A DNA stretch of 64,000 nucleotides, from NCBI GenBank assembly GCA_977020255.1, contig CDROCS010004715.1:1-64000 (forward strand). The letters run 5' to 3'. Below are positions 7,894 to 45,782 of this stretch, piece by piece (within the stretch, counting starts at the first letter, position 1; every line of letters begins with the position of its first letter). Below the pieces are notes generated by a model. The model worked only from the letters and a program-made list of their open reading frames with translations. It ran no database searches and was not told the DNA's origin. This stretch comes from Obrimoposthia wandeli (taxonomy: Eukaryota). The translations under genes and the position numbers were made by a program.

Positions 7894-8325
7894 TTATAAA
7901 TGCCTAGAAAATCAATAAAGATAGCTTAACTTGTTGAAATTAAGTCTAGAGCCCATAGTCATTAAATCTGTATGGAAGTGATTGAAAAAACGTATCAGTG
8001 TCTGTCGTAAGTGATTTTCGCTTTGAATAGGAAGATAAGAGTCTACTATCTAACGTTGCTTATACCTTATTAGAATAAACAAGTTTTGCCAAGTGGATTG
8101 GATATTAGTCATGCAGTTTTTTTTAAAAGAGCGATTGGTAATACCAATACTCTATGCTTGTGGTATTGGTCGAATGTGTAGGGTGAAATTCGATAATTGA
8201 GAGCTGTAACGAAGAATCTCTGTATTAATAATTGTGCTCCTCTTTCGATACTGCTTTAATCTGACTCAAGTACAAATAATGTACGGCTTTAAATAATAAA
8301 AATAAAACCACTGTCAGGTATCAAA

Positions 8326-27003: not shown

Positions 27004-27034
27004 CTCACTATAAAATGTTTTACCATAAAATGTC

Positions 27035-30033: not shown

Positions 30034-30565
30034 TTGAATGTCCTATTGAATGTTCGATGGTTACATCTACTTCAACGTGTTTGTTATTTTTAATCCAACT
30101 GTCACAAGCCGCATAAAGTTCATCAACATCGTACTGGCACTTTGCTTGATAAAGGCCCTGGCTTATAGCGCTGGCTAAACCTTCATTAAAAAAGGTTTTC
30201 TCACTATGGCGTATTAAAAAATCAGTCCACGCTAATCCCGATAGGCTGATCGCGGCAGGATATTGCTTAAGGCAGTAGCGTTTTAGTATTTCATTTGATT
30301 GTTGTAAGAATGCTTGAGAGTCTTGGGTGGATTTAAATTGAGAATATTTCAGCGCTAATAAGCTGAGTGCGGCTTTTTTATTCGCATTTTTGATTTTATA
30401 GTGGCGCCAAAAATAGATGCCTGCACCGATTGAAATGATAATCAGCGTTAGCAGAGCCCACCAACCAAATGATATCGGCCAATCACTAATTACATTGGGT
30501 AAATGAATGTCTTTTAGTTGAGAAATATCGGCGGGTGGGGCGGAATTGGTATTAGGTGCATTCAT
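30026..30565 (-). CDS. DUF4381 family protein
   Basis: QLKDIHLP..ISDWP...GWW followed by a TM helix; usual position in moxR operons. Confidence 0.85.
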   Translation of the reverse strand: MNAPNTNSAPPADISQLKDIHLPNVISDWPISFGWWALLTLIIISIGAGIYFWRHYKIKNANKKAALSLLALKYSQFKSTQDSQAFLQQSNEILKRYCLKQYPAAISLSGLAWTDFLIRHSEKTFFNEGLASAISQGLYQAKCQYDVDELYAACDSWIKNNKHVEVDVTIEHSIGHSND

Positions 30566-31548
30566 TATTTATTGCCCTTAGTAGCATCAGCTTTGATCAT
30601 TTTTATCTGACTCAAGCCTAAGCCCTTGCGTAATACCGTAACAATATCATCTTGAGCTTGTAAGCTAATGAGAGGGATACCCAACTTCAACGTCCGTTGC
30701 TTCAGTTCCTGCTGGCGTTGCTCAAAGGCTTGTTGATGTTCTAAACCTTGAGACTTGGAGTAGCATTCAAGTTGTAAGCGTTGCTTACCATCGGTAAGGG
30801 GATAGCTGCCCAAGGGTAAAATATTTTGCTCAAAGGCATCAAAAATATTAATAGCAACAACATCATTATGCTTGCTGATTTGGTGCAGTTGGCGCTCACA
30901 ATCTAAATCAAAGTCCTGCCAATCAGAAATTAGATAAATAGTACTACCAGGGCGCGTAACACGTCGTGTATGACGAAGCATGTCAGCTAAGCGACTTATC
31001 GATGATTCTGTTGTATTAGGATCTTGCTGTTGTTTGAACTGAGATAATTCATGTAAAACATGCATTACTTGTTTACGTCCAGGCTTAGGACGAATGTCTG
31101 TCTCATGATTATCGTCAAACAACAGTGCGCCAATACGATCGCCGTTATTTAAAGCCGACCAAGAGAATAAGCTGCAAATATCGGCGGCTAAAACGGATTT
31201 AAATGCATGCTGGGTACCAAAAAACATACTAGAACGTAAATCGCAGACAGCCATAATGGGGCGTTCACGCTCTTCACGAAACACTTTAATATGCGGCTTT
31301 TGCGTTCGAGCAGTAACCCGCCAATCCATCGCGCGAATATCATCGCCGGGTTGATAGCTGCGCACTTCTGAAAAATCCACCCCTCGACCCCTTAGGTTCG
31401 AGGTATGAATACCTGCCATTTCATTCAGTACTTTCTTTTGCTTATGAATAGGCAAAAGTTTTGCTAGATGACGAATAGCCACTAGATTGTCGGTACTGAT
31501 AAGTGCGCCTTTGGATAAGCCGCCATTACTATCCATTTTTAGAGCCAT
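30565..31548 (-). CDS. DUF58 family protein
   Basis: RGRGVDFSEVRSYQPGDDIRAMDWRVTAR, DLRSSMFFG, ISDW. Confidence 0.92.
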   Translation of the reverse strand: MALKMDSNGGLSKGALISTDNLVAIRHLAKLLPIHKQKKVLNEMAGIHTSNLRGRGVDFSEVRSYQPGDDIRAMDWRVTARTQKPHIKVFREERERPIMAVCDLRSSMFFGTQHAFKSVLAADICSLFSWSALNNGDRIGALLFDDNHETDIRPKPGRKQVMHVLHELSQFKQQQDPNTTESSISRLADMLRHTRRVTRPGSTIYLISDWQDFDLDCERQLHQISKHNDVVAINIFDAFEQNILPLGSYPLTDGKQRLQLECYSKSQGLEHQQAFEQRQQELKQRTLKLGIPLISLQAQDDIVTVLRKGLGLSQIKMIKADATKGNK

Positions 31549-31550
31549 TG

Positions 31551-32546
31551 TTACGCAACCGGAACGCGAGTAATCAGTTCATTGATGACCTTGTTGGTGG
31601 TCATGCCACTGGCTTCAGCTTCAAAACTTAGCAGTATGCGATGGCGTAGCACATCATGGGCAATCGCTTGCACATCATCAGGGCTTACGAAGTCACGGTT
31701 ATTTAGCCATGCATGTGCACGGGCACAGCGCTCTAATGCGATCGTGCCACGAGGGCTCGCGCCATAATCGATCCAGTTCGCCAGATCTTCACCATATTGT
31801 TCTGGGTTACGGGTAGCCATAACCAGTTGTACAATATATTGCTCTACGGATTCACTTAAATGTAAGTTTAATGTTTCTTGGCGAGCGGCAAAAATATCGA
31901 CTTGAGTCATTGTTTCACCGATATGCGGTGCTTGATCCATGGCTTCTCCACGGACTAACCGTAAAATCTTCTTTTCGGCTTCGGCATCGGGGTAGCCAAT
32001 AACAACGTGCATCAAGAAGCGGTCGAGCTGCGCTTCAGGCAATGGGTAGGTGCCTTCTTGCTCAATTGGGTTTTGGGTTGCCATTACTAGAAAAAGTTTT
32101 TCTAGTTTCATGGTATTGCCACCCACAGAAACTTGGCGCTCGGCCATCGCTTCTAATAACGCACTTTGCACTTTAGCGGGGGCGCGGTTAATTTCGTCGG
32201 CTAAAATTAAATTATGAAAAATAGGGCCTTGTTGAAATTTGAAGCTGCCTTCTTCCGGGCGATAGATTTCAGTACCGGTAATGTCACCGGGTAATAAATC
32301 AGGAGTGAACTGAATGCGTTTGAAGTCACCTTCAATATGATCGGCCAAAGCATTAATCGCTTTGGTTTTTGCAAGGCCAGGAGCACCTTCTACTAATAAA
32401 TGGCCATCCGCCAAAAGAGCGATTAATAAGCGATCAACTAGGTGTTGTTGGCCAATGATGTTGGCGCTCAATGCTTGCGATAGTTGTTTGAATCCTTGCT
32501 GCATCTTGCTGCTCACTTTCTTTGCGATGTAATTATTTGATTTCAT
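31551..32546 (-). CDS. moxR: MoxR family AAA+ ATPase
   Basis: EGAPGLAKT, RIQFTPDLLPGD, LADEINRA, ATQNPIEQEGTYPLPEAQLDRF, GASPR. Confidence 0.95.
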   Translation of the reverse strand: MKSNNYIAKKVSSKMQQGFKQLSQALSANIIGQQHLVDRLLIALLADGHLLVEGAPGLAKTKAINALADHIEGDFKRIQFTPDLLPGDITGTEIYRPEEGSFKFQQGPIFHNLILADEINRAPAKVQSALLEAMAERQVSVGGNTMKLEKLFLVMATQNPIEQEGTYPLPEAQLDRFLMHVVIGYPDAEAEKKILRLVRGEAMDQAPHIGETMTQVDIFAARQETLNLHLSESVEQYIVQLVMATRNPEQYGEDLANWIDYGASPRGTIALERCARAHAWLNNRDFVSPDDVQAIAHDVLRHRILLSFEAEASGMTTNKVINELITRVPVA

Positions 32547-32776: not shown

Positions 32777-35700
32777 ATGAGCAATGCAAAGCCAATGAAT
32801 AAACCGGATTTATCTGCGCTTAATCGATTGATCGATGATCGCAACGATAAAGCCCAGGCACAAAGAATCAAAACGTTTGCTGAACTATATTATGATGCAG
32901 CGCCCGCCGCGGATCTAAATGCTCGTAATCCTGATGACTTATATGGGGCAACGGTTTCTTGCTGGCAGTTTATTCAAGAGAATAATATTTCTAAGCCGAA
33001 AGTGCGAGTATTCAATCCAGACTTTGAAGCTCATGGCTGGCAGTCAACGCATACTGTGATTGAAATTCTCGCAAAAGAAATGCCGTTTTTGATTGATTCG
33101 GTACGCTTGGAATTGAATCGCCGCCTAATGTCTATTCATGCTATTCATTCTTGTGTTGCTCATATAGAACGGGATTCAAAGCATAAGAAAAAGTCCAGTT
33201 CACCCTTTTTTAAAGCGAACGATAAAAGCCAAGCAGAAGCCATTATTTATATCGAAGTCGATCGCCATACTGATAGCGACATGCTTGACGATTTGACGAA
33301 TACTTTGGTTCTTATTTTAAACGAAGTCAGTCATTGCGTTGAAGATTTCTCTGCCTTAAAAGAAAAAGTAGTTTTGGTTTCGGCGGAACTCGGTAAATTA
33401 CCTTGTGATAAACCGAAAAAAGAAATTAAAGAATCTCAGGATTTTTTAGCTTGGTTAGGGAATGAGCATTTTACGTTTTTAGGCTGTGATGAATTTACCG
33501 TCGAAAAGAAAGACGGTAAGACCTTTATTGTTAGAGAAGAAGCTAATGACTTAGGTATCTTTCGTTATCACAAAACAGATACCCAGCGTCGAAAACTAGA
33601 AGAGTTACCCAACGAAATTCAAGCGTTTGCACTGAGTTCTGACATTGTAAACTTCTTTAAATCTGGTGCTCGCAGTCGTGTGCACAGGCCTGCTTATCCA
33701 GATTATGTCGTAGTAAAGCGTTTTAATGAGGCTGGCGAGGTTGTCGGTGGCATTCGTTTTATGGGCTTATATACCTCAATGGTGTATATAGAAACGCCCA
33801 ATAGCATCCCACTCATTCGCCAAAAATTAGAGCAAGTTCGTAAATTAGCAGGGTTCGATGCAGGCAGTCATGGTGGTAAAGAGCTCAATCGTATTCTGGA
33901 AGTTTATCCTCGAGATGAATTGATTCAGTCAACGTCTGAGCAGCTTTATCATACCGCGTTAGGTATTTTGAATATTCAGGAGCGCCGCCAAACTCGAGCA
34001 TTCACTCGTAAGGGTACTTATGGCAAGTTTTTATCTTGTATGGTTTTCACTCCACGAGATATTTATAATACGGAATTGCGTACTAAAATTCAGGGGATTT
34101 TGGAGGAAGCTTGTGATCCAGAATTCGTCGAATTCAATACCTATTTCTCCGAGTCCATTTTAGCAAGAACGCACTTTGTTTTACGCTTAAAAAATAGTGA
34201 AAGTGGTGATGTCGATCATCAAGAGTTAGAACGCAAAATTCAGCAGGTCGCCCGCTCTTGGGGAGATGATTTACACGCTAGTTTAGTCGAGCAGGTCGGT
34301 GAAGAAAAAGGCAATCGCTATCACCAAATGTATCGTGATACTTTTCCTGCGGGTTATCGTGAGGATTTTGGGTCTCGTACCGCGGTTGCAGACATTCAAC
34401 ATATCGAAGACTTGAGTGAAAATCCTGAAAAAGGCATCGCGATGAGCTTTTATCGCGAAATCGAAGAAGGGGATAACCAGCTTCGTTTTAAGCTGTTTAA
34501 TCTTGATAATGTTCTACCGCTTTCCGATATTTTACCCATTTTAGAAAACCTTGGATTACGAGTTATTGGCGAGCATCCTTATGGTCTGCAATTTGAAAAT
34601 GGCAGTAAGGTATGGATTCATAACTTCTTATTGGAATATACCTTGGCTGAGCGCATCGATATGCAAGCGGTTAAGTGTTTATTCCAAGAAGCCTTTAAAA
34701 ATATTTGGCATGGCCATGCTGAAAATGATGCTTTCAATAAACTCGTTTTAGGCTCTGAGCTGGGGTGGCGAGATATTGCGATGTTGCGTGGTTACGCACG
34801 TTATATGAAGCAAATTCGATTCGGCATTAGTGAAGCTTATATCGGAGAAACATTAAGTCGTTATATCTCGGTTAGTCGATTACTTGTAAAAGCCTTTGAG
34901 GTTCGTTTTGGTCTGCATACCGATTGGACCAAAGAACAGCGTGAGTTGGCTTTCAACGCGATAGAGCTAGAAATAACCGATGCACTTGATAACGTAGAGC
35001 AACTCAACGAAGACCGTATCATTCGTCGTTATTTAGAGTTAATAAAAGCAACGTTGCGAACAAATTTTTACCAATGCGATGAGCAGGGTAATCCAAAAGA
35101 TTATGTCGCCTTCAAACTTAATCCTAGTGTTATTAGTGATATGCCGTTACCTAGGCCTATGTTTGAGATATTTGTCTATTCACCTCGTGTCGAAGGGGTG
35201 CATTTACGAGGTGGTAAGGTAGCTCGGGGTGGCTTGCGTTGGTCTGACAGAAATGAAGATTTCCGTACCGAAGTATTAGGCTTGGTTAAAGCACAGCAAG
35301 TTAAAAACGCGGTTATTGTGCCTGTGGGTGCGAAGGGCGGATTTGTCGCTAAAAACCTTAATCAAGACATGAGTCGTGATGAATGGTTAGAAGAAGGTAT
35401 CGCATGCTATAAGATTTTTATCAGCTCATTATTGGATGTTACTGATAACTTATTAGAAGGAAACGTAATTCCACCTGAAGAGGTGGTTCGCCATGATGAC
35501 GATGATGTGTACTTGGTGGTTGCTGCCGATAAAGGGACTGCCACCTTCTCTGATATATCAAACGGTATTGCCGTTGAACGTGGCTTCTGGCTTGGCGATG
35601 CATTCGCTTCTGGCGGCTCGATTGGTTATGACCATAAAAAGATGGGCATTACCGCACGCGGTGCTTGGGTTTCAGTACAGCGTCATTTCCGTGAATTAGG

Positions 35701-37654
35701 ACACAACGTTCAAGAAGAGGATTTCACCGTAGTCGGTGTTGGTGATATGGCGGGGGATGTATTTGGTAATGGCATGTTGTTATCAGAACACATTCAGTTA
35801 ACCGCTGCCTTTAACCATATGCACATTTTTATTGATCCTAATCCCGATTCAGCGTCTAGCTTTATTGAGCGTAAGCGATTATTTGAATTACCTCGATCGA
35901 CTTGGGATGATTATGAAAAATCCTTAATTTCAAAAGGCGGAGCAATTTTCTCTCGTAGCGCTAAGTCGATTAAGATCAGTCCTGAAATGAAAGAACGCTT
36001 TGATATTCAAGCAGATGCACTTACGCCGACGGAGTTGATTAAATCCTTACTCTTGGCGCCAGTCGATTTACTTTGGAATGGTGGCATCGGTACCTACATT
36101 AAAGGCAGTAGTGAAACCCATGCCGATGTCGGTGATAAGGCGACGGACGCTGTTCGAATTAACGGTAATGAGGTTCGAGCCAAAGTGATCGGCGAGGGTG
36201 GGAACTTAGGTATGACTCAGTTAGGTCGTGTTGAGTTTGCCTTAGCGGGTGGTTCATCTTATACCGACTTTATTGATAATGCGGGTGGTGTAGATTGCTC
36301 TGATCATGAAGTGAACATCAAAATCATGCTTAATGAATTAGTCGCTTCTGGTGATATGACGATGAAGCAGCGTAATGCTGTTTTCATGGAAATGACCGAT
36401 GCAGTATCTGATCTAGTATTGACTAACAACTATCGTCAGACGCAAGCCATTGCTTTGGCTCATCGTGAATGCCAAGAACGTTTAGACGAATACGTTAATT
36501 TAATTCATGACTTTGAAGAGTCAGGTAAGCTCAATCGCGCATTAGAGTATTTACCAGACGAAGAAACCATCGCAGAACGTCGTATTAAGGAGCAAGGGTT
36601 AACCAAGCCAGAATTGTCGATATTGATTTCTTATGCCAAGGCTGATTTGAAAGAGCAGTTAAACCTTGAAGAAATTAGCCAGGATCCATATTTGTGTAAA
36701 ATCGTAGAAACGGCTTTCCCGCAAAAGTTGGTCGATGAATTCAATAGCCCCGTAATGAACCATAAATTACGTTCCGAAATTGTGGCTACTCAACTAGCCA
36801 ACGATCTCGTTAACTATATGGGTATTACGTTCGTGAACCGTTTAACCGAATCAACTGGCGCAACCGTTGTGGAAGTTGCGAGAGCGTATGTTGCCGCTAG
36901 AGATGTATTTGGTTTACATGAGTTATGGTCAAAAATCGAAGCCTTGGATTACCTTATTCCTGCCAAAGTACAGGCGGATATGATGAGTCGCTTAATGCGC
37001 TTAGTGCGTCGTGCTAGTCGTTGGTTCTTACGTAACCGTCGTTCGGATATGGATGTCGCGAGTGAAGTAGAATCATTCAAAGCCAGTGCAGACTCCGTGC
37101 GTAATAATCTCTCGCAATGGTTGCAGGGATCTACGCAAGAAACGTGGCAAGGACGATTCGATCAATACTCTGCTCAAGGGGTGTCAGATGAAGTATCGGC
37201 TTTGGCAGCAGGCACAAGTTCATTGTTCTCAGCATTAGGAATTATTGAAGCATCGCATCAAACCAATCGCCCAGTTGAGCGAGTCGCAGAAGCTTATTTC
37301 TGTGTGGGTGAAACCTTGTCATTGAACTGGTTTATGGAGCAAATAAATACTTTGGATGTTAACTCTCATTGGCAAGGTCTTGCGCGTGAAGCCTTCCGTG
37401 ATGATATGGATTGGCAGCTACGTTCATTAACGGTTTCAGTACTTAATAGTGAAGTGAAGCCTGATATGCCAATGGATGAACTAATGGCGACGTGGAAGAC
37501 CGCGCACCCTAACTTAGTAAGCCGTTGGCAGCGTATGTTGGATGCGCTTCGCGCTTCGGATAAGGCAGAATATGCTATGTACTCTGTGGCGCTTCGTGAG
37601 CTACTGGATTTGGCTCAGGCGAGTAAGCATCAAACTACTGATAATTGTAGTTAA
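32777..37654 (+). CDS. gdhB: Large NAD-specific glutamate dehydrogenase
   Basis: 1625 aa; HLRGGKVARGGLRWSDR, VPVGAKGGF, VVAADKGTATFSD, GYDHKKMGITARGAW, EGGNLG. Confidence 0.96.
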   Translation: MSNAKPMNKPDLSALNRLIDDRNDKAQAQRIKTFAELYYDAAPAADLNARNPDDLYGATVSCWQFIQENNISKPKVRVFNPDFEAHGWQSTHTVIEILAKEMPFLIDSVRLELNRRLMSIHAIHSCVAHIERDSKHKKKSSSPFFKANDKSQAEAIIYIEVDRHTDSDMLDDLTNTLVLILNEVSHCVEDFSALKEKVVLVSAELGKLPCDKPKKEIKESQDFLAWLGNEHFTFLGCDEFTVEKKDGKTFIVREEANDLGIFRYHKTDTQRRKLEELPNEIQAFALSSDIVNFFKSGARSRVHRPAYPDYVVVKRFNEAGEVVGGIRFMGLYTSMVYIETPNSIPLIRQKLEQVRKLAGFDAGSHGGKELNRILEVYPRDELIQSTSEQLYHTALGILNIQERRQTRAFTRKGTYGKFLSCMVFTPRDIYNTELRTKIQGILEEACDPEFVEFNTYFSESILARTHFVLRLKNSESGDVDHQELERKIQQVARSWGDDLHASLVEQVGEEKGNRYHQMYRDTFPAGYREDFGSRTAVADIQHIEDLSENPEKGIAMSFYREIEEGDNQLRFKLFNLDNVLPLSDILPILENLGLRVIGEHPYGLQFENGSKVWIHNFLLEYTLAERIDMQAVKCLFQEAFKNIWHGHAENDAFNKLVLGSELGWRDIAMLRGYARYMKQIRFGISEAYIGETLSRYISVSRLLVKAFEVRFGLHTDWTKEQRELAFNAIELEITDALDNVEQLNEDRIIRRYLELIKATLRTNFYQCDEQGNPKDYVAFKLNPSVISDMPLPRPMFEIFVYSPRVEGVHLRGGKVARGGLRWSDRNEDFRTEVLGLVKAQQVKNAVIVPVGAKGGFVAKNLNQDMSRDEWLEEGIACYKIFISSLLDVTDNLLEGNVIPPEEVVRHDDDDVYLVVAADKGTATFSDISNGIAVERGFWLGDAFASGGSIGYDHKKMGITARGAWVSVQRHFRELGHNVQEEDFTVVGVGDMAGDVFGNGMLLSEHIQLTAAFNHMHIFIDPNPDSASSFIERKRLFELPRSTWDDYEKSLISKGGAIFSRSAKSIKISPEMKERFDIQADALTPTELIKSLLLAPVDLLWNGGIGTYIKGSSETHADVGDKATDAVRINGNEVRAKVIGEGGNLGMTQLGRVEFALAGGSSYTDFIDNAGGVDCSDHEVNIKIMLNELVASGDMTMKQRNAVFMEMTDAVSDLVLTNNYRQTQAIALAHRECQERLDEYVNLIHDFEESGKLNRALEYLPDEETIAERRIKEQGLTKPELSILISYAKADLKEQLNLEEISQDPYLCKIVETAFPQKLVDEFNSPVMNHKLRSEIVATQLANDLVNYMGITFVNRLTESTGATVVEVARAYVAARDVFGLHELWSKIEALDYLIPAKVQADMMSRLMRLVRRASRWFLRNRRSDMDVASEVESFKASADSVRNNLSQWLQGSTQETWQGRFDQYSAQGVSDEVSALAAGTSSLFSALGIIEASHQTNRPVERVAEAYFCVGETLSLNWFMEQINTLDVNSHWQGLAREAFRDDMDWQLRSLTVSVLNSEVKPDMPMDELMATWKTAHPNLVSRWQRMLDALRASDKAEYAMYSVALRELLDLAQASKHQTTDNCS

Positions 37655-37677
37655 GAGAGGGTAGTAGGGTTCAGGTG

Positions 37678-37711
37678 GGGCTAGCGTTGCATTGCAGCGT
37701 TAGCCCTTTTT
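37678..37711. terminator. Rho-independent terminator between gdhB and the convergent speD
   Basis: 13-bp stem gggctagcgttgc / gcagcgttagccc (two G-U pairs) plus a T-run. Confidence 0.8.
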
Positions 37712-37748: not shown

Positions 37749-38150
37749 TTAAGAAAGATAGCTTCCACGTTGTTTCGTTGTACTGATCACTTTCTTAGCT
37801 TTAAAGCGTTCTTGAAGTATATCTACGGCCAACTCAGGCTCAGCGTTTCCGCACATAAAAATATCAAATGCAGCAAAGTTTCTTTCTGGCCAAGTATGAA
37901 CACTGATATGCGATTCCGAAAGAACAGCAACTCCAGTAACTCCATGGTTAGGAGTGAAGTGATGTAAGTAAATATGCAGCAGGTTAGCGCCACATGTTTC
38001 AACGCATTCACGCATCACTTTTTCAATTAACTCAATATCGTCTAAATGCTCAGCTTCATACAGGTCGACAATAATATGCATACCTGCAAATGTTTTCCCA
38101 TCACGAAGCATCAGTGAGTCAGATGCAGAATCTTCTTGGGTATTATTCAT
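37749..38150 (-). CDS. speD: S-adenosylmethionine decarboxylase proenzyme (short class 1B type)
   Basis: GMHIIVDLY, HHFTP.HGVTGVAVLSESHISVHTWPE (E-S-H self-cleavage site), DIFMCG. Confidence 0.93.
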   Translation of the reverse strand: MNNTQEDSASDSLMLRDGKTFAGMHIIVDLYEAEHLDDIELIEKVMRECVETCGANLLHIYLHHFTPNHGVTGVAVLSESHISVHTWPERNFAAFDIFMCGNAEPELAVDILQERFKAKKVISTTKQRGSYLS

Positions 38151-39192
38151 GCTCAGCGCCGAGAATATCTAAACTGATATTGTTTATTCGGTTTGGGGCT
38201 GTATAGAATATCGCCATGCCGGGTTGCAGTTGCGTTGTCAGGCATGGATTAATCGCAACAGAGGTATCTTTAATGGCTAACGCGAGCGCACCGTATTTAA
38301 GTTTCATATTAAAAAATACATTTTTGAACGTGCTAGAGAAATCACTGGTAGGATCAATATCAAATCGATACAGATTTTCTCCTTTTAGGTTTGATATGAG
38401 CTGCTGAATAACGGTGCTAGATTCTCTATCCTGCAGTTCTTGCGCCATGAGAAATACATTGACTGGCAGTATGACTTGATTCAATGAAACATCATTGGCA
38501 GGTAATTTCGTGATCTTTGTTTGATGTTCTTCGTTATTTAAGTAGCAAACCATATGAGCCGAATGGTTGATATCGCGGAAAGAGAAAGCGGTAATGAAGG
38601 TCTGGTTATCATCTCGACCGTGCACGATCACACTTTTAGCCTTGTCTGCACTTGAACGTATTAAAACATCTTCTGATGACAGCTCACCTTTAATGAATAC
38701 AATTTCTGAATTGCTTAAAGGATTTGTTTCTTGTTCTTCTGAGCAGAGGATTATTATCTCATTAGGATTGTTTTCAAGTAATTCGGCAATAACTTTTTCA
38801 GTACTGCCTTTTCTATAGCCCATCAATAACGTGTGGTTCTCAGTACTCATTATGCCTAATCCTTTATTCTTTTTGTTTGCCAGACTAATGATTAGCTCTG
38901 ACAGTTTACCAATTATAATTGCAACAGCACCAATACCCGATGCCATAATGAATCCCGCAATGATTCTGCCTTCGGTAGAACTGGGCGCGAAGTCGCCATA
39001 GCCTACGGTCGTAATCGTTACGACAAACCACCAGGAATAATTATTAATAATATCTGTTTCATTAAAGGCAACCATTCCCAGTAAACCAAAAATGTAGGTG
39101 AATGATATGGTGATTAATAAAGTCATCCACGCGTGATCATAAAGTTTAAATAATGCTTTTCTATACGTTTTGCTTAACAGCGAAAAAATCAT
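38143..39192 (-). CDS. Two-TM potassium channel with a cytoplasmic RCK/TrkA-like domain
   Basis: WWFVVTITTVGYGD selectivity filter; EDVLIRSSADKAKSVIV RCK segment. The ATG at 39192 overlaps the TGA of the upstream gene. Confidence 0.88.
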   Translation of the reverse strand: MIFSLLSKTYRKALFKLYDHAWMTLLITISFTYIFGLLGMVAFNETDIINNYSWWFVVTITTVGYGDFAPSSTEGRIIAGFIMASGIGAVAIIIGKLSELIISLANKKNKGLGIMSTENHTLLMGYRKGSTEKVIAELLENNPNEIIILCSEEQETNPLSNSEIVFIKGELSSEDVLIRSSADKAKSVIVHGRDDNQTFITAFSFRDINHSAHMVCYLNNEEHQTKITKLPANDVSLNQVILPVNVFLMAQELQDRESSTVIQQLISNLKGENLYRFDIDPTSDFSSTFKNVFFNMKLKYGALALAIKDTSVAINPCLTTQLQPGMAIFYTAPNRINNISLDILGAEHE

Positions 39193-40859
39193 TCTACTTG
39201 CCAACTCCTATCGGTATATGCGGTTAATAAGCAAGGTTCCATTAATGTATTAATGCAGGGTTTTTTAGCACTAAGCTCACCTTTGCCGAATGCAAAAGAA
39301 GACGCTAATAATTCAGGTGTAATAAAATCAGTTTCTACGGCGAACGTTTCAAAATGAGACAAACGTTGTTTTAATTCGGCGGGTTTTTCTGCTGCAGTCC
39401 ATGCAATGTAATAACCCCAATCTCCAAATGAAGGAATGTTTTGGCGATAAGGTAATGTATTAAAACCTGCTGCCTTTAGCGTATTGCCAATTGCGAGGTA
39501 GGCTTCTTTTGCATGGTAAGGCGATGTCGATTGAATTGAAATGTAGGCCTCGGGGGTAAGGTATCGTTTCAAGTTCTGGTAAAACTGCTTGCTGTACAGT
39601 TTGCTTATTTCAATGCCAGAAGGGTCAGGTAAATCGATGATTACCGCATCCCATTTTTGCTTAGGTTTATTTCTTAAGAATAAGTCCGCATCAATATTAT
39701 AGACAGTGATAGCCGCAACCCATTCAGCTTTTTCTTCCGATCCATTCTCTGATAAATAAATTCCCTGCTTTGCTCCAGAGTCTATAAGTTGGAAAGGTAA
39801 GGTTTCTAGTTTTGCATTCTTGAATGAATCATTGTTTAAATTAGTTAACAGCTCATTCGTGGATGCAATTTTCACCATATCAGGATCCAAGTCGACAAGT
39901 GTCACGCTATGAACATCAGCGTATTTGTTAACCTCTCGTAAGGCTAGTCCATCACCCCCACCTAAAATTAGAACGTTGTCTCTGGACGGGGTGGCCGCCA
40001 TTAGAGGATGAACAAGGAAATCATGGTATCTCTCCTCATCCAGTGATGAGAACTGAGTATTACCATTAATATACAGTCGGGTATCACCTGAGCCCGAATT
40101 ATGAGTGATCACTAAATGCTGATACTTAGTAGTCTCTTTATGAACGATGGGGTCTTCATAGAAGCGCTGCTCAAGTAGGCTACTAATATCCCTGTTGCTT
40201 ATGAAACCCATTATTAATAATACCGAAGTAACTACGAGTAGAACGACATAGATAACCGGTTTTGGAATGAGTTTTTGCTTCAGGAAATAAATAATAGTGA
40301 TTGAAGCAACCATAAAGTTAAAGCCGGCGACGATGAAACTGATCTCGGTTAAAGGATAGTTTTTAAGTAAATATTCTACCCAAATCACAGCACCCACAAA
40401 CGCGCCGATATAGTCCATTGCGTAGACAATGGTTAAGTTCGTTCTTAGCTCTATTTTATGTTGGTCTATGATTCTCATGACCAGAGGGATTTCGAAGCCA
40501 ATCAAAAAACCGACAGACAATACAAAAAAGTAGTGAACTATTTGAAAACTATTTTCTAAATAGCCGTATGCCGCGTAGATTGCTAAAGGCGCAAAGCCCC
40601 CCAGCAAAGCCATGATAACTTCCACCGCAATAAACTTTTGTAGAAGGTTGTTATCAGACATCTTACTCTGAACAAGACCTGAAACCCCCATCATTAGCAT
40701 CATGCTGGCGATCACCATCGAGAACTGTTCTATGGAGTTCCCAAGTATGTACGTGGTTATCGTTGCAAGAACATATTCATTTACTAATCCGCTTGCGCCT
40801 GTCGTGAACATACAGAACGCAAGTAAAATGGGTAAGAATCTTGGCATTCTTCTTTGCAT
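39189..40859 (-). CDS. speE: Membrane-bound polyamine aminopropyltransferase (spermidine-synthase-like, multi-TM N-terminus)
   Basis: ~220-aa hydrophobic N-terminal half; YING.TQFSS.DE.RYHD, LILGGGDGLALREV, VDLD, IIDLPDP, KLYS.QFY. Confidence 0.88.
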   Translation of the reverse strand: MQRRMPRFLPILLAFCMFTTGASGLVNEYVLATITTYILGNSIEQFSMVIASMMLMMGVSGLVQSKMSDNNLLQKFIAVEVIMALLGGFAPLAIYAAYGYLENSFQIVHYFFVLSVGFLIGFEIPLVMRIIDQHKIELRTNLTIVYAMDYIGAFVGAVIWVEYLLKNYPLTEISFIVAGFNFMVASITIIYFLKQKLIPKPVIYVVLLVVTSVLLIMGFISNRDISSLLEQRFYEDPIVHKETTKYQHLVITHNSGSGDTRLYINGNTQFSSLDEERYHDFLVHPLMAATPSRDNVLILGGGDGLALREVNKYADVHSVTLVDLDPDMVKIASTNELLTNLNNDSFKNAKLETLPFQLIDSGAKQGIYLSENGSEEKAEWVAAITVYNIDADLFLRNKPKQKWDAVIIDLPDPSGIEISKLYSKQFYQNLKRYLTPEAYISIQSTSPYHAKEAYLAIGNTLKAAGFNTLPYRQNIPSFGDWGYYIAWTAAEKPAELKQRLSHFETFAVETDFITPELLASSFAFGKGELSAKKPCINTLMEPCLLTAYTDRSWQVE

Positions 40860-40872
40860 TATGAAACGGGCC

Positions 40873-41724
40873 TTACAATATAGCGTTGCTAAGAATCATC
40901 GCCATGCCGATTTTGGCACCTGATAGCTGTAAGGCTGGAACCATACGATCTTCAAGCAGTATCTCTTTCACATTAGAAGAGGTGATAATTAATAGATCAA
41001 TTAAATACTCAAAGACATAAAGAAATAGCATTCCTGTTACGGCTAAAAGTAAGTACTCAGACATCATATAAGACAAGGTCGCATCGGTTGAATTTCCGGC
41101 AATCGCGGATTTCAGAATAAGAGCGTAAGCAATCAACTTACCACCGATATAAATGCCAGAAGAAGTATTGCCATTACTAATACTTTCAATGATGTTGAAG
41201 TCTCGCAAGATTGCCTTTTCATAAAATAAAACAAGGGCTACTAACGTGATTTGACCTGCAATGAAATAGCCTAAGCTGGATAGGATGCCGCCACCTTCAC
41301 CAACAATACTTGAATGAGCAATAATGCCGGTACCGACAAGCATGCCAAACTCTACAATCCCAACGGCGATGTTGTTGTTTTTAATTGCATTCGTATTATC
41401 GATACCTGGTGTGACAAGGCGATCTGTAAATACAAGAGAGCTCAACATAAATACCACGGCAAGTGCGCCATAAATGCCGGTAGTAATAAGGTCTTCTACT
41501 AATGACTCACTATTTGCCCCAGAAAGCAGTCCCATAAACGCAATGGCGAGGCCAAACTGAGCACCTGTTCTACGCAGTCCTGCGGCAAGATTTCCACCGG
41601 CCAGCTCTTCGTCTGCATTGTAGTGTTTAGCGGCCATAAAGTTTAAGGCGTACTTTAAAGAAATCATAAATGCCAAATAGACAAATGCGTATAAAATATA
41701 AATTCCGTATTGTTCGATGTTCAT
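40873..41724 (-). CDS. DUF350 family membrane protein (internally repeated)
   Basis: Repeated GNLAAG / NNIAVG / GNTSSG motifs each followed by a TM helix. ATG 41724 chosen; the ORF track start at 41802 overlaps the upstream gene. Confidence 0.75.
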   Translation of the reverse strand: MNIEQYGIYILYAFVYLAFMISLKYALNFMAAKHYNADEELAGGNLAAGLRRTGAQFGLAIAFMGLLSGANSESLVEDLITTGIYGALAVVFMLSSLVFTDRLVTPGIDNTNAIKNNNIAVGIVEFGMLVGTGIIAHSSIVGEGGGILSSLGYFIAGQITLVALVLFYEKAILRDFNIIESISNGNTSSGIYIGGKLIAYALILKSAIAGNSTDATLSYMMSEYLLLAVTGMLFLYVFEYLIDLLIITSSNVKEILLEDRMVPALQLSGAKIGMAMILSNAIL

Positions 41725-41749
41725 AATATTACCTTTAAAAATTATTGGG

Positions 41750-43378
41750 TTACTTACCGCCGCCAGAAGGGCCTCTGCCTCGACTGGAAGGACCTGCACC
41801 ACGAACAGAATTGCTTACCCTAGAAATTTTGCCTGATCTAACACCTTTCACAACGTTAGGATTTCTGCGCGAGTACGAGCTGTTTTGATATCTAGAATCT
41901 GAATAAGTACGAGATCCGTAAGTGCCATACGAGTTATTTCGACCGTAATAAGATGAGCTTCTGCTTGCCGAATTATAACCATTCCACTGGTTGTAGGAAT
42001 ATCGAGAGGGCATGAAGGCGTTAAATAGGCTGTACATTCCGTAGTAATGCCAAAAGGAATTACCATTAGATTGTCGCCATTCACCATGTTGGTTGGACCC
42101 AGTTGCTTGGCCGTTGACCATCGTTGGCTTAGCAATCATCGACATGCCGACAGGTTCTGCAGAAGTAATTATTTCAGATTCATAAAACCCTAAAGGTTTG
42201 GAAACAATCGCCATACCGAGGTCGGCTTCATTTTTCCAATAGTCTTCATTACTAACACGTTCCCAGTCAGTATCTTGAGTCTTTCCATTTTCAATGATCG
42301 TATATTTTTGATAGGTGGCTGCAAGAGTTTTATCCACCCAGAACTCAGCATAGCCGTGGTTTCTAGGCCAGTTTTTTCTAGCAGAAATGTTGAGTGCATC
42401 CCAGCGAGCTCGCGGAATGTTATAGCTCAGGCTTCCCCAGCCTTTATCAGCAATTGTTGAAACGGTAAGCGCTTCAAAATATTCGAAAGTATTCGCATCG
42501 ACAGGTGCTTCAGGGAATCGATAGTTACTTCCCGCGCCACAACCATCAGCCTCGCACCAGGTTGCTCGACCTATAACAATATAATAATCTACCTTTTGGT
42601 CAGCAAGAACCTTAACGTAGTTTCTATCAAGCTGTCGAAGCAGGACTTTGTTTTCTTTTACATTTTTTTTCAGTAATTTATCTTGCGCTAAAATGGCTTG
42701 GTACGTATCGCCATAAAGAGCAAAGTCGGTATTGGTCGAGGCGTGCTCTTTAGATAAAATAGATTTTTGATCACGTAAAGTCTGCAGTAAAGTCTGTGCT
42801 ACGACTATTTTACTATTAATATCGTCAGTCTTTTTGGGATGTGCCTTTTTGGACCTTGATCCTGCATTAATAAACCCATCCAGAGTCCGTATTGCACTAG
42901 GTTCAATCTTTTCTATCTGTTTAAAGTAAGGATCTTTATTTTTACGAGCGTCGAGTATAAGTCTCGATCTTTCGTAAGAATAGTTAGAGTATTTTGACGA
43001 CGTCGTTATTAACGCACTGGCCTTAGAGATAGCAGCAACTAATGGCTTAATATCATCTTCATGGTCACGGTCCGTAATAGGAGTAATAACGTCAGTATTG
43101 AGCTTAGTTGCTGCCGAAAATTCAGTTCTTGCTGATGTTAATGTGGCTGCCCACTTTTCACGATCCGCATAAGGTTTCAAAAACTCCCAATCTTCTGTGG
43201 ACTGAAGAGCTTTGAAGTCCTTCTCAGATTGTGTCAGTTGAAATTTTTGAGCATTGTAGGAACGCTGAAAGTCATTCGCTTGTTTCACATATTCATCGGG
43301 TAGGGCATAGACTGCTTTATACCCGATGTATAAAAATAAACCGATGACCAGAAGAACAATGATTTTAGATGGCTTCAT
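41750..43378 (-). CDS. Membrane-anchored hypothetical protein: helical stalk, Cys-pair domain and Gly/Ser/Arg/Tyr-rich tail
   Basis: N-terminal TM (IIVLLVIGLFLYIGY), helical region, WCEADGC, GEWRQSNGNSFWHYYGMY, low-complexity C-terminus ending SSRGRGPSGGGK. Confidence 0.85.
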   Translation of the reverse strand: MKPSKIIVLLVIGLFLYIGYKAVYALPDEYVKQANDFQRSYNAQKFQLTQSEKDFKALQSTEDWEFLKPYADREKWAATLTSARTEFSAATKLNTDVITPITDRDHEDDIKPLVAAISKASALITTSSKYSNYSYERSRLILDARKNKDPYFKQIEKIEPSAIRTLDGFINAGSRSKKAHPKKTDDINSKIVVAQTLLQTLRDQKSILSKEHASTNTDFALYGDTYQAILAQDKLLKKNVKENKVLLRQLDRNYVKVLADQKVDYYIVIGRATWCEADGCGAGSNYRFPEAPVDANTFEYFEALTVSTIADKGWGSLSYNIPRARWDALNISARKNWPRNHGYAEFWVDKTLAATYQKYTIIENGKTQDTDWERVSNEDYWKNEADLGMAIVSKPLGFYESEIITSAEPVGMSMIAKPTMVNGQATGSNQHGEWRQSNGNSFWHYYGMYSLFNAFMPSRYSYNQWNGYNSASRSSSYYGRNNSYGTYGSRTYSDSRYQNSSYSRRNPNVVKGVRSGKISRVSNSVRGAGPSSRGRGPSGGGK

Positions 43379-44027
43379 CGGCGCCCTCACTATTACGGGT
43401 CATTATTAGTTCAGTCTGTAGCACTTTTATGGCAGATGCCGCCAGTTCTTTGCTGATGAAAGCTTCACGTTCAGGTTTAGAGTCTTCTTCTTCCCAAAGC
43501 TCTAGCGTTAAGCAAGTCCCATCATCGCCTTTAAATTCATACATTCGAACCTGTAGAGGCTCATCTGTTGCACTACGGTAAAAGAGTGCAGCCCAAGTAT
43601 CGTCTTCAATATAATGGAAGTTTTTTCCTTTATATTTAACGGTCCCAGATTCCTCTTCGGCAATATCATCAAGCATATTACGAGTTAAAGGTTTACCATT
43701 TTCAGTAAGGTCTTTAAGTTGCACCTCTGAAACGGTTTGGCTAACTTCAAGTTCATCATCAAATTCCCACTCGATGAACGTCTTCTCGCCCGTCAAGACG
43801 TTTAAAAGCTGAAGCTCGGTTACCCAATATTCGTTCTTCTTCTTTTTAAAAGAACTCCACTTAACTTCCAAATAACGAAAAGCTTCAGAGACTAGATAGG
43901 TATTTCCCTTGATCTCTAAATATCCGCCTTTTTTAACGTGACGAATATCTTGCTTGCACTGTCTGAGGTCAGCGTCTGGAGAAAGACCACGAATGGCTTG
44001 AAATTGTGTGGCTAAATTATTTTGCAT
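43365..44027 (-). CDS. DUF4178-like domain protein
   Basis: GYLEIKGNTYLV...W.TEL.L...FIEWEFDDEL and YKGKNFHYIE...MYEF...LELW pattern. ATG 44027 overlaps the telA stop region; the ORF track start at 44147 lies inside telA. Confidence 0.6.
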   Translation of the reverse strand: MQNNLATQFQAIRGLSPDADLRQCKQDIRHVKKGGYLEIKGNTYLVSEAFRYLEVKWSSFKKKKNEYWVTELQLLNVLTGEKTFIEWEFDDELEVSQTVSEVQLKDLTENGKPLTRNMLDDIAEEESGTVKYKGKNFHYIEDDTWAALFYRSATDEPLQVRMYEFKGDDGTCLTLELWEEEDSKPEREAFISKELAASAIKVLQTELIMTRNSEGADEAI

Positions 44028-45198
44028 CACTACCACCAATCTTCGGAGTAGAAGCATCTGCAATTTTAGCGGTGGAATCAGTGCCAACATCTTGCACATC
44101 TTTAATGCCATTTGACGACGAACGCGCATCGCGCATGCCATCAGCAACAGGAGATAGTTGGGCTGTCATGTCGGCAAGACGATCACTTGTTTCACGAGCT
44201 TTAGCCGTACTAGTACTCATTGTCTCGTTGGCAATTTTAACGGCGTTCATGAGTCTATCGAAGCCTTCTTCCATTTTCTCTAAAGCAATTACAGGATTGT
44301 TGTAAAGGTCGCCCACTTCTTGAGCGGCTTTCTCAATGGTGCCTGCATTCTGAGCCATCATGTCGCCAAGACCTGCTTGGAACTGTTGCACAGCATCCTT
44401 CACGGTTGCTTGCTGCGCTAATGCAGCTTGAATGCGTAATGCATTGTTCATAACCATTGGGCCAACGGTCAGTGCGCTGTCGATTGATTCATCTAATAAC
44501 GAGTTGGTCGCGATTGTTTGATCAATACTAATAAAAAACTGTACAGATGCTTGCTCCATTGTGCGCAAATCGCGAATTCGACGCATGGCTTGGTTTTTAA
44601 CCGTTGCGAACTTTTGCTTTTCTTGAATTTCATCCGCTTCGGTTAGGGCATCTTGAGCATCGACTTGCTGAATGAATAATTCACCAATATAAATCTCAGA
44701 TTCAATTTCTTTTTTGGCTTCGGCTATTTCGTTATATTGCTGTTCTAGCGCAAGGTTTGATTCTAAAAGATCATCTTTACCATTACGAAGGCCGTCAAAG
44801 ATTGCGTCTACATGGCTTTGCATTGGTTGATACTGACGAACAAAACGGCTAACAGCTTTACGCTTAATTCCACTTGGCATCCATGAAAACCACCAAGAGT
44901 TATGCAAAGAGTGAGGGTTTAGCTGGTCCATGGTTGAACGTAATTCAAGCAACTTTTCCCCTGCAGGTGATTTACCGTCTAGGCCTTTCAGTAAGCTATT
45001 AACGTTGCCTTTCATTAGGTCGTTAGCAGAAGACATTTTCGTCTGAGCGGATGCGCCAATATTACTAACAATGCGACTTAGGGCAGGGCCGCCATTTTCT
45101 TTAGTTGATTCAATGAGATCTTGTGAGCGCTTTTGCATCAGCTCAACTTTATCTTCAGAAGCCCATTTTGGAGATTTTAATGTGTTATCGGTCGTCAT
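44017..45198 (-). CDS. Toxic anion resistance protein (TelA/YaaN family)
   Basis: LLELRSTMDQLNP, RFVRQYQPMQSHVDAIFDGLRNGKDDL, RIRDL; long coiled coils. Confidence 0.8.
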   Translation of the reverse strand: MTTDNTLKSPKWASEDKVELMQKRSQDLIESTKENGGPALSRIVSNIGASAQTKMSSANDLMKGNVNSLLKGLDGKSPAGEKLLELRSTMDQLNPHSLHNSWWFSWMPSGIKRKAVSRFVRQYQPMQSHVDAIFDGLRNGKDDLLESNLALEQQYNEIAEAKKEIESEIYIGELFIQQVDAQDALTEADEIQEKQKFATVKNQAMRRIRDLRTMEQASVQFFISIDQTIATNSLLDESIDSALTVGPMVMNNALRIQAALAQQATVKDAVQQFQAGLGDMMAQNAGTIEKAAQEVGDLYNNPVIALEKMEEGFDRLMNAVKIANETMSTSTAKARETSDRLADMTAQLSPVADGMRDARSSSNGIKDVQDVGTDSTAKIADASTPKIGGSDAK

Positions 45199-45701
45199 TA
45201 CGCTTTTCCTTCTGCATTGAATTTGGCTTTTAAGAATAGCGATTTATTATCGAATTCTTTTTGATCATTTTTTGCTAGTAGAGCTTCAATATCAACGAGC
45301 TCTTGTTCTAATGTTTGTAGATTGTTAACAAACTCCTCAGAAGCACCTTCGCGAGCATCGTCCTTTAAATTAATGTAAGGAAGTACACACTTGTTCGGTA
45401 AATATTCTGAGGCAATCCGATTCACGGTCCAGGAAAATTCACCACTGGCACAGACGTGATTTTCAAGTCGAGGGAAAATGGCGATTAATTGATCGATAAT
45501 GGCTTCGCATCTGGAGGTCAGTTTTGATCCAATGGCGGCTTTTCTGATGACTAAATTAAGTTCTAATAAATTCTGTTCCGGAGTAGGCGGCACAATCTCA
45601 GAAGATGCTGTTTCAGGTTTTGTTTTGGAGTAATGTTTTATTAACGAATAGGCAGCGACAGCGATGATAGCAATGACTATTAAAATGATAACCGGGTCCA
45701 T
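45198..45701 (-). CDS. XpaC-like (BCIP-hydrolysis family-like) membrane-anchored partner of TelA
   Basis: N-terminal TM, helical body with a SEYLP...LPY..L motif; TAATG-coupled to the TelA gene, as in xpaC-yaaN pairs. Confidence 0.5.
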   Translation of the reverse strand: MDPVIILIVIAIIAVAAYSLIKHYSKTKPETASSEIVPPTPEQNLLELNLVIRKAAIGSKLTSRCEAIIDQLIAIFPRLENHVCASGEFSWTVNRIASEYLPNKCVLPYINLKDDAREGASEEFVNNLQTLEQELVDIEALLAKNDQKEFDNKSLFLKAKFNAEGKA

Positions 45702-45782
45702 TTAAGCTTCCTTTATGAGTATTTTGTATGATCAAGCAAGTATCAAGTAAGCCCACACTTCGTGGACTTTAATATAATTAGG

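Follow-up and report, generated by a model that had tools for sequence, protein, structure and literature searches.

Associations between membrane-stress proteins and enzymes of polyamine chemistry have been described computationally in bacteria. Ravi et al. 2024 (mSystems, PMC11237479) reported an operon, illustrated by Shewanella oneidensis, in which a CesT/Tir-PspA dyad is combined with a seven-transmembrane (7TM) spermidine synthase, an 8TM DUF350 protein, a Ctha_1186 lipoprotein and a DUF4178 protein. The same study reported sister operons with a glutathionylspermidine (GSP) synthetase-like ligase, a K+ channel, DUF350, DUF1190, an S-adenosylmethionine decarboxylase (AdoMetDC) and a polyamine oxidase, as well as a mycobacterial DUF4247/DUF2617 variant. 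It proposed that PspA systems monitor polyamines or the "aminopropylation of other substrates", with reference to Li et al. 2019. The present work deals with an operon of eight genes, g1 to g8, found in a stretch of 64,000 nucleotides (the window: positions 1 to 64,000 of contig CDROCS010004715.1 in assembly GCA_977020255.1, deposited under Obrimoposthia wandeli). In order, its genes encode an uncharacterised membrane protein (X), a TelA-family protein, a DUF4178 protein, an exported protein called G4, a DUF350 protein, a transmembrane-fused aminopropyltransferase (TM-SpeE), a K+ channel with an RCK domain and the AdoMetDC SpeD. The original prediction, made from the DNA letters, presented this operon as the best candidate in the window for an undescribed system; it is a TelA-headed variant, with its own SpeD and RCK K+ channel, of a computationally described and widespread envelope module, whose PspA-headed version is already contained in Ravi et al. 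2024 (PMC11237479), an article in which the term 'TelA' does not occur. On balance, and with moderate confidence, we read the operon as an envelope-stress module in which a dedicated supply of decarboxylated S-adenosylmethionine (dcSAM) and a membrane aminopropyltransferase would modify an acceptor located in the envelope rather than make bulk spermidine, with TelA and X playing a PspA-like part and the K+ channel being accessory.

Other reports bear on relatives of individual components. A study by Li, Kurihara, Kim, Liang and Michael (2019) is said to describe class 1b AdoMetDC genes clustered with a membrane-fused protein resembling spermidine synthase (SpdSyn) and with DUF350; according to its abstract, reportedly, the AdoMetDCs were active, spermidine was absent and the fusion failed to complement an Escherichia coli speE mutant. 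In Mycobacterium tuberculosis, the EXIT screen found Rv2599, the analogue of G4, to be exported in vivo and did not recover Rv2597, the analogue of the DUF4178 protein, as exported. In E. coli, YjfC and YgiC are named peptide-spermidine ligases by RefSeq, following Pederick et al. 2023, and a 2025 review of TolC states that the physiological substrate of these enzymes "remains unknown". Finally, the xpaC-telA gene pair has been implicated in the tolerance of membrane-active antibiotics, namely in the daptomycin resistance of Enterococcus faecium (PMC6811118).

Gene content and conservation of the operon

All eight genes are present as open reading frames (ORFs) on the minus strand between positions 37749 and 45701 (Table 1). 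Seven of the eight family labels given in the original prediction lie above curated thresholds, and the label XpaC-like, given to g1, falls short. The TelA family is recognised at 144.2 bits (PF05816, cut-off 30) over profile positions 16-326 of 332, DUF4178 at 36.3 bits (PF13785, cut-off 25) and DUF350 in two stretches at 133.8 bits (PF03994, cut-off 26); the eight hydrophobic segments of the latter protein are joined by loops whose lysine and arginine (K/R) counts alternate between high and low. The g6 protein matches Spermine_synth and reaches 574.7 bits for NCBIfam NF002956 / PRK03612 (cut-off 472, residues 9-554), and its 24.9 bits for NF037959 'fused MFS/spermidine synthase', under the cut-off of 40, indicate distant kinship only. 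The channel scores 42.9 bits for PF07885 (Ion_trans_2) and 38.1 bits for PF02254 (TrkA_N), and SpeD scores 130.1 bits for the class 1b family TIGR03330 (AdoMet_dc, PF02675; cut-off 75.65), with the Glu-Ser self-processing site lying in its LSESH motif.

The gene-neighbourhood survey that the original prediction had suggested was conducted by scanning one genome per species with the TM-SpeE alignment, which yielded 360 loci, of which 80 were kept and searched with hidden Markov models (HMMs) of the window proteins. The core order X-TelA-DUF4178-(DUF2617)-G4-DUF350-SpeE is colinear in 43 of these 80 loci, which are distributed over about ten phyla, and the eight genes are found in the exact order of the window in seven. 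This colinear conservation argues against a chance neighbourhood and in favor of the single functional unit that had been predicted. X and TelA are each present in 48 of the 80 loci, DUF4178 in 51, DUF2617 in 32, G4 in 56, DUF350 in 68, the K+ channel in 36 and SpeD in 19; many loci outside the colinear set end at contig ends. The lineages include Gammaproteobacteria, Campylobacterota, Cloacimonadota, Acidobacteriota, Chloroflexota, Desulfobacterota, Gemmatimonadota and Bipolaricaulia. Eight metagenome-assembled genomes (MAGs; L007, L031, L072, L035, L037, L049, L053 and L076) are labelled Paracoccaceae, Polaribacter, Nanoarchaeota or Candidate Phyla Radiation, but the SpeE tree places their clusters within gammaproteobacterial or other bacterial sequences; their contigs are probably mis-binned, and the phylum counts are approximate. 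The gammaproteobacterial clade is devoid of DUF2617, and it is there that SpeD joins the operon. The K+ channel shows at least ten gains or losses on the SpeE tree. The channel and SpeD are thus accessory, the channel recurrently so.

At the head of the operon, the sequence of g1 has K/R residues directly after its transmembrane (TM) helix, and 51 of its homologues were found adjoining TelA. The name XpaC-like rested on this positional resemblance only. A Pfam or NCBIfam match was not obtained for g1, even when the Pfam scan was extended to E<=10, and among 49 homologues a single one gave PF10112 (XpaC / Halogen_Hydrol), with an E=0.0067 that falls short of every threshold. When 5.8 billion proteins were searched by profile, the matches included no PF10112-bearing relative, and the profile search of the PDB did not support the XpaC identity either, so that this identity was rejected. 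Relatives of TelA and of the DUF4178 protein were not found in the PDB. In two Chloroflexota loci (L060 and L061), PspA (PF04012) and a 186-aa gene stand in place of X and TelA; among relatives of the window SpeE, TelA-headed and PspA-headed clusters number 48 and 2, respectively. X and TelA thus occupy the slot of the CesT/Tir-PspA dyad of the sister operons, and they therefore probably have a part in sensing or stabilising an inner membrane under stress. Even if the envelope-modification reading were false, this exchange of modules would still support a PspA-like membrane role for TelA.

Several variants of the locus were observed in the survey. In one gammaproteobacterial MAG (L042:11669-14685), SpeE and the K+ channel are separated by a protein of the SdiA-regulated family, with a TerC/DUF475 membrane protein coming after the channel; the presence of TerC beside TelA recalls tellurite-resistance gene sets. 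The 600-kb plasmid pAMCP48-600 of Alteromonas mediterranea carries a permuted full module, SpeE-SpeD-X-TelA-DUF4178-G4-DUF350, that is devoid of the K+ channel (L084:8971-15629), and the module is therefore mobile. A flavin amine oxidase/NAD(P)-binding protein is paired with TM-SpeE at L069:8287-9879 (minus strand) and in 14 other loci from Acidobacteriota or Latescibacterota. The flavin amine oxidase gene is divergent and upstream in Acidobacteriota, whereas it lies immediately downstream of TM-SpeE in Ralstonia (L085:9529-11151); in several of the amine-oxidase loci, G4 and DUF350 are not nearby. A reduced variant on a plasmid of Ensifer sp. (L086:6415-10192) comprises DUF808, SpeD, a double DUF350, a 220-aa TM-beta-TM protein without the tail described below, and TM-SpeE, and it is adjoined by an arginase-family gene and a solute-binding protein. 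An anti-phage function was also considered and rejected, the PADLOC scan of the eight proteins being negative: it returned a generic methyltransferase-fold match for SpeE (mad2, 50.9 bits) and none for the other seven.

The aminopropyltransferase TM-SpeE and the tail of G4

SpeD and TM-SpeE had been predicted to form a pair of donor-producing enzyme and transferase, and this view holds, the processing motif of the former and the dcSAM and catalytic motifs of the latter being intact. In g6, these motifs are Q247, Y278/H279, GGGDG at positions 300-304, D323, D390 and D409-x-x-D412-P. Over 56 homologues, Q247, D274/E275, Y278/H279, GGGDG, D390, D409 and D412 are invariant and D323 is at least 90% conserved; all the donor and catalytic residues align with those of solved SpeE structures. 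A Foldseek search matched the SpeE of T. thermophilus (E=2.5e-16), the closest folds being those of broad-specificity and long-chain polyamine synthases. The membrane domain, as modelled by AlphaFold2 (AF2), is made of helices 9-39, 43-66, 72-100, 102-133, 138-167, 170-194 and 201-231. Within it, residues E80, E123, D149, Q64, N141 and N181 are invariant and E28 is at least 90% conserved. These acidic and polar residues may form the lining of a route for a cation such as dcSAM.

The distribution of charges in TM-SpeE bears on the location of its catalytic domain. In the 56 homologues, the loops of the N-terminal face contain about 7.8 K/R per sequence versus about 1.2 for the other face; relatives of 33-42% identity show the same bias (9-13 versus 0-2), which is independent of the reading of helix 1. 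With seven TM helices, the positive-inside rule would place the catalytic domain outside the cytoplasm. The cysteine content of g6 is low, like that of the exported G4 and unlike that of SpeD or of the channel. Cys535 and Cys543 are both present in 34 of 34 SpeE sequences of the gammaproteobacterial clade and absent elsewhere, where these positions are mostly occupied by Asp or Glu together with Arg, Lys or a hydrophobic residue; this pattern fits two residues in contact, between which a disulfide could form. To our knowledge, dcSAM-dependent enzymes acting outside the cytoplasm have not been recognised so far, and such a location, if true, would be without precedent.

The co-encoded G4 protein belongs to a family of 1037 clusters at 50% identity, 760 of them found at E<=1e-10. 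A lipobox cysteine is present in 109 of 150 representatives; most homologues having this signature, G4 is considered to be exported. The AF2 model has a predicted local distance difference test (pLDDT) score of 90.2 and shows an N-terminal anchor followed by a long helical bundle, then a domain rich in beta structure and finally a disordered tail. Its fold gave nothing below E=0.06 with Foldseek against the PDB, and the sequence profile produced only coiled-coil noise there. The tail, about 22 residues long, is disordered (pLDDT<50), yet it is among the two most conserved 20-residue blocks of the protein. Its final Gly-Lys is 99% conserved, and 148 of the 150 representatives (at most 50% identical to one another) end in Lys, the exceptions being one protein with a single extra residue and one that is truncated. 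When the 12751 ORFs of all loci were searched with a strict tail motif, 65 were retrieved: 54 members of the G4 family, a G4 homologue in L049, nine Chloroflexota proteins and one chance match. The nine Chloroflexota proteins are about 330 aa long, otherwise unrelated to G4, and encoded between DUF2617 and DUF350, which is the operon position of G4. They resemble G4 in the last 40 residues or so only, and the tail therefore behaves as a portable module. An aminopropyltransferase requires a primary amine, and a Lys side chain amounts to a tethered aminobutyl group, an analogue of putrescine. The Lys at the end of the G4 tail is the best candidate acceptor for the aminopropyl group.

A comparable tail can be observed in E. 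coli. The DUF1190 lipoproteins YjfM (L087:12388-13026) and YgiB (L088:3745-4416) are encoded immediately upstream of YjfC and YgiC, respectively, and both end with a tail of the type Thr-Val-x-Arg-Gly-Gly ... Gly-Gly that is similar to the tail of G4. In all 34 intact YjfM orthologues the tail is near-invariant, while the sequence that precedes it drifts. A relaxed motif spanning the G4 and DUF1190 tails, defined after the sequences had been seen, is present in 44 of 59 G4 proteins and in both E. coli proteins, and in none of 12690 background ORFs; an HMM of the tail, built as a 26-residue low-complexity profile, was without statistical power to link the two groups. A ligase such as YjfC requires a terminal carboxylate, that of a Gly, as in glutathione. 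The DUF1190 tails are thus candidate physiological substrates of YjfC and YgiC.

Proposed function and alternatives

In the mechanism that we favor, SpeD would produce dcSAM in the cytoplasm, and the 7TM-fused aminopropyltransferase together with the 8TM DUF350 protein would bring the aminopropyl group onto an acceptor held at the envelope, instead of forming bulk spermidine from free putrescine. The near-invariant C-terminal Lys of G4 would be the best candidate for this acceptor and, its side chain mimicking tethered putrescine, the product would therefore be a protein-borne chain resembling spermidine. The membrane-anchored X and TelA would act on the cytoplasmic face, and the RCK-gated K+ channel would be an accessory coupling the process to ion flux or to membrane potential. 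The toxic-ion response and the link to K+ flux put forward in the original prediction are hypothetical. The attachment of aminopropyl groups at the membrane had been proposed in the original prediction, and it fits the evidence better than a housekeeping synthesis of spermidine. A more specific form of this mechanism, advanced here tentatively, is a new protein modification in which the extracytoplasmic domain of TM-SpeE would aminopropylate the epsilon-amine of the C-terminal Lys of G4, giving a tethered spermidine-like chain in the periplasm. The dcSAM would reach the outside domain through the acidic 7TM conduit, possibly with the help of DUF350, and the E. coli-type operons would arrive at nearly the same product by ligating spermidine onto the Gly-Gly terminus.

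Several points weigh against the modification of an envelope acceptor. The module is described computationally only, none of its members having been characterised by experiment, and the catalytic pocket of g6 resembles that of an ordinary polyamine synthase, so that free diamines or triamines may be its acceptors. The Ralstonia locus and some loci of Bryobacterales have TM-SpeE and the amine oxidase with neither G4 nor DUF350 within reach, and Ensifer keeps DUF350 and SpeD without the tail protein; the tail is therefore not the acceptor for the whole enzyme family. As for the motif common to the G4 and DUF1190 tails, it was set post hoc and the corresponding HMM was powerless. There is also a problem of compartment, the tail of G4 being exported whereas dcSAM is cytoplasmic. 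The E. coli ligases are ATP-dependent and must therefore act in the cytoplasm, on a tail that would be modified before export. An alternative that holds for both systems is a cytoplasmic modification of the tail that precedes export of the final portion of the protein; this would contradict the topology deduced from the charge bias of TM-SpeE. The EXIT screen, for its part, did not recover Rv2601 as exported despite 16 in-frame fusions in the catalytic domain. The negative result is a weak one, because a fusion depended on the native promoter being present on its fragment, of 0.5-5 kb, and this promoter is estimated to lie more than 2.7 kb upstream.

The same observations can be read as the sign of a local production of free polyamines, SpeD and TM-SpeE making spermidine or a related compound at the membrane, the 7TM domain and/or DUF350 exporting it for the protection of a stressed envelope, and G4, DUF4178 and TelA acting as sensors or scaffolds. 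The PmrAB-regulated speD2/speE2 genes of Pseudomonas aeruginosa offer a comparable arrangement. The canonical catalytic residues of g6, its kinship of fold with broad-specificity and long-chain synthases, and the name of its NCBIfam family, polyamine aminopropyltransferase, all agree with such a function, as do the flavin amine oxidase accompanying TM-SpeE in 15 Acidobacteriota/Latescibacterota loci and in Ralstonia, the arginase-family gene and solute-binding protein that adjoin the Ensifer cluster, and the buried acidic TM residues, which suit the passage of a polycation. In addition, surface spermidine is known to protect the outer membrane of P. aeruginosa (Johnson et al. 2012). This explanation leaves aside, however, the near-invariant Lys-ended tail and its transfer to unrelated scaffolds. 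The lack of spermidine in bacteria with the fusion and the failure of the fusion to complement speE, both reportedly observed by Li et al. 2019, also speak against it, and we consider it rather doubtful.

The tail itself could have another purpose, its Lys being an anchor to peptidoglycan or a docking peptide while the enzyme acts on a different amine of the envelope, for instance in a lipid head group or in peptidoglycan. Lipoproteins of the Braun type have a C-terminal Lys as the site of their cross-link, most lineages have G4 in lipoprotein form, and some genomes possess TM-SpeE without G4. The tail is nevertheless kept in Chloroflexota, Acidobacteriota, Cloacimonadota and Campylobacterota, where linkages of the Lpp type are not known, and the related E. 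coli tails end in Gly-Gly beside a ligase acting on peptide C-termini, which makes an anchoring role improbable. Far more remote is the case of an ordinary speED housekeeping pair lying beside unrelated stress and membrane genes, with genome compaction as the cause of the tight spacing. Even if speE-speD adjacency is common and the region is a chromosomal one of window-average composition, the colinearity of 43 of the 80 loci over about ten phyla, the permuted complete set on a plasmid, the fusion of the synthase to TM helices and the repeated arrival of the K+ channel and SpeD in the cluster strongly disfavor this reading, which was rejected on synteny.

The modification of an envelope acceptor touches two questions raised in the literature, namely what a membrane-fused SpdSyn-like enzyme aminopropylates if not putrescine, and what the substrate of YgiC and YjfC is. 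The operon family suggests a single answer to the two of them, in the form of the conserved tail at the C-terminus of a co-encoded exported protein. If this is true, a widespread stress response of bacteria would consist in modifying envelope proteins with polyamine-type groups; at least 760 clusters (50% identity, E<=1e-10) belong to the G4 family alone, there are relatives in M. tuberculosis and E. coli, and the adjacent DUF1190 tail would be the long-sought substrate of YjfC and YgiC.

Locus anatomy and comparison with known systems

The junctions of the operon are, in order, a one-base TAATG overlap at 45200-45196, overlaps of 11 and 14 nt, gaps of 25 and 13 nt, and overlaps of 4 and 8 nt. 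These values, obtained with start codons chosen to match the lengths of homologues (ATG at 44027 for g3, 43378 for g4, 41724 for g5 and 39192 for g7), are the same as those of the original prediction, in which the eight genes abut or overlap. Within the operon, 24 promoter-like sites were counted versus 24.8 expected from shuffled sequence, and 8 terminator-like sites versus 8.0. The promoter-like site upstream of g1 is followed by an AAGGAA Shine-Dalgarno sequence and by the ATG at 45701; an Rfam search found no riboswitch or leader RNA. The operon had been predicted to end at a terminator at 37678-37711. The hairpin found there has its T-run on the plus strand and an upstream A-run only on the strand of the operon, and it therefore serves the convergent glutamate dehydrogenase gene (gdh) instead.

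Table 1. Position of the operon genes, their domains and neighboring features in the window, with the tail-bearing proteins of other loci
Feature	Position	Strand	Description and basis
g1 (X)	45198..45701	-	167 aa; one N-terminal TM helix (N-out) and a cytoplasmic domain of ~140 aa; uncharacterised family, always partners TelA
g2 (TelA)	44017..45198	-	TelA-family protein, 393 aa, cytoplasmic; PF05816, E=6.5e-42
g3 (DUF4178)	43365..44027	-	220 aa, cytoplasmic; PF13785
g4 (G4)	41750..43378	-	Exported protein, 542 aa; N-terminal anchor, helical bundle 28-249, beta-rich domain 254-445; no Pfam family
G4 C-terminal tail	41753..41818	-	Residues 521-542, Gly/Arg/Ser-rich, ends Gly-Lys-COOH; candidate aminopropyl acceptor; conservation, pLDDT<50
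g5 (DUF350)	40873..41724	-	8TM protein with two DUF350 (YjfL) repeats, 283 aa, N-out/C-out; PF03994 twice, E=5e-39
g6, N-terminal domain	40167..40859	-	7 TM helices with conserved polar/acidic residues; AF2, conservation
g6, C-terminal domain	39189..40166	-	Aminopropyltransferase fold; PRK03612, Foldseek, residue alignments
g7 (K+ channel)	38143..39192	-	2TM channel, TTVGYGD filter, cytoplasmic RCK/TrkA_N domain, 349 aa; PF07885 and PF02254
g8 (SpeD)	37749..38150	-	Class 1b AdoMetDC, 133 aa, LSESH; TIGR03330
Promoter-like site	45718..45746	-	TTGATA-17-AATACT; consensus match only; in the 81-bp gap behind the upstream rRNA methyltransferase gene
Hairpin between operon and gdh	37677..37707	.	14-bp, GC-rich; T-run on + strand only
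gdh	32777-37654	+	NAD-specific glutamate dehydrogenase, 1625 aa, Bac_GDH family with ACT domains; convergent with the operon, common terminal hairpin
'Aerotolerance' operon	25342-32546	-	MoxR AAA+ / DUF58 / VWA / BatA-BatD type; window neighbor
691-aa ORF	53391-55466	-	No Pfam match at E<=1e-5
Tail-bearing Chloroflexota proteins	L038, L039, L043, L044, L046-L048, L050, L058; ~7950-8940 in each		~330 aa; last ~40 residues common with G4

The base composition of the operon is that of the rest of the window, and its neighbors are housekeeping genes (rRNA methyltransferase, pyrD, rlmKL, amt and the MoxR/Bat operon); the region belongs to the chromosomal core and is not an island. The closest locus, in an Oleispira sp. 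MAG, has the same eight genes with a SpeE 90% identical, and the carrier of the operon is an Oleispira-like gammaproteobacterium (Oceanospirillaceae).

The links that the original prediction drew with the yjfIJKLMC cluster of E. coli and with actinobacterial DUF350/TM-SpeE clusters are real. The operon has in common with yjfIJKLMC/ygiBC a DUF350 protein (YjfL), a stress dyad at the operon head (with the PspA-family YjfJ), an exported protein with a conserved Gly/Ser/Arg-rich C-terminal tail and an enzyme building a polyamine conjugate. In E. coli, however, an ATP-grasp ligase joins spermidine to a peptide carboxylate, whereas the window encodes a dcSAM-dependent aminopropyltransferase, and the tails end in Gly-Gly in the former and in Gly-Lys in G4. 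Homologues of YjfC, YjfK, YjfI and YjfJ were detected neither in the window operon nor in any of the 80 loci, and the operon is not of the yjfIJKLMC type. The xpaC-telA (yaaN) dyads of Firmicutes likewise have a small membrane-anchored protein encoded directly upstream of TelA, but g1 is without detectable sequence relationship to XpaC/PF10112. As for the clusters that Li et al. are said to have described in 2019, they would resemble the window by their class 1b SpeD, their membrane-fused SpdSyn-like protein, their DUF350 and the proposal of an acceptor other than a polyamine, and differ from it in that the window protein is of the PRK03612 type, below the cut-off of the fused MFS/spermidine synthase family.

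The M. tuberculosis genes Rv2597-Rv2601 (DUF4178, DUF2617, DUF4247, DUF350 and TM-SpeE) follow the same order of cytoplasmic DUF4178/DUF2617 proteins, small exported protein, DUF350 and TM-SpeE; this set differs by having neither a TelA nor a PspA dyad, by a single 4TM DUF350 and by an exported protein of another family (DUF4247). Another of the closest described systems is the PspA-polyamine operon (group 2) of Ravi et al. 2024. The head of the window operon is formed by a TM protein of unknown family and TelA in place of the CesT/Tir-PspA dyad, SpeD and the RCK K+ channel are appended to it, and DUF2617 is missing from its gammaproteobacterial clade. Both operons nevertheless unite DUF4178, an exported or lipoprotein component, a double DUF350 and a 7TM-fused aminopropyltransferase, and they have in common the proposed tie between membrane-stress proteins and aminopropylation.

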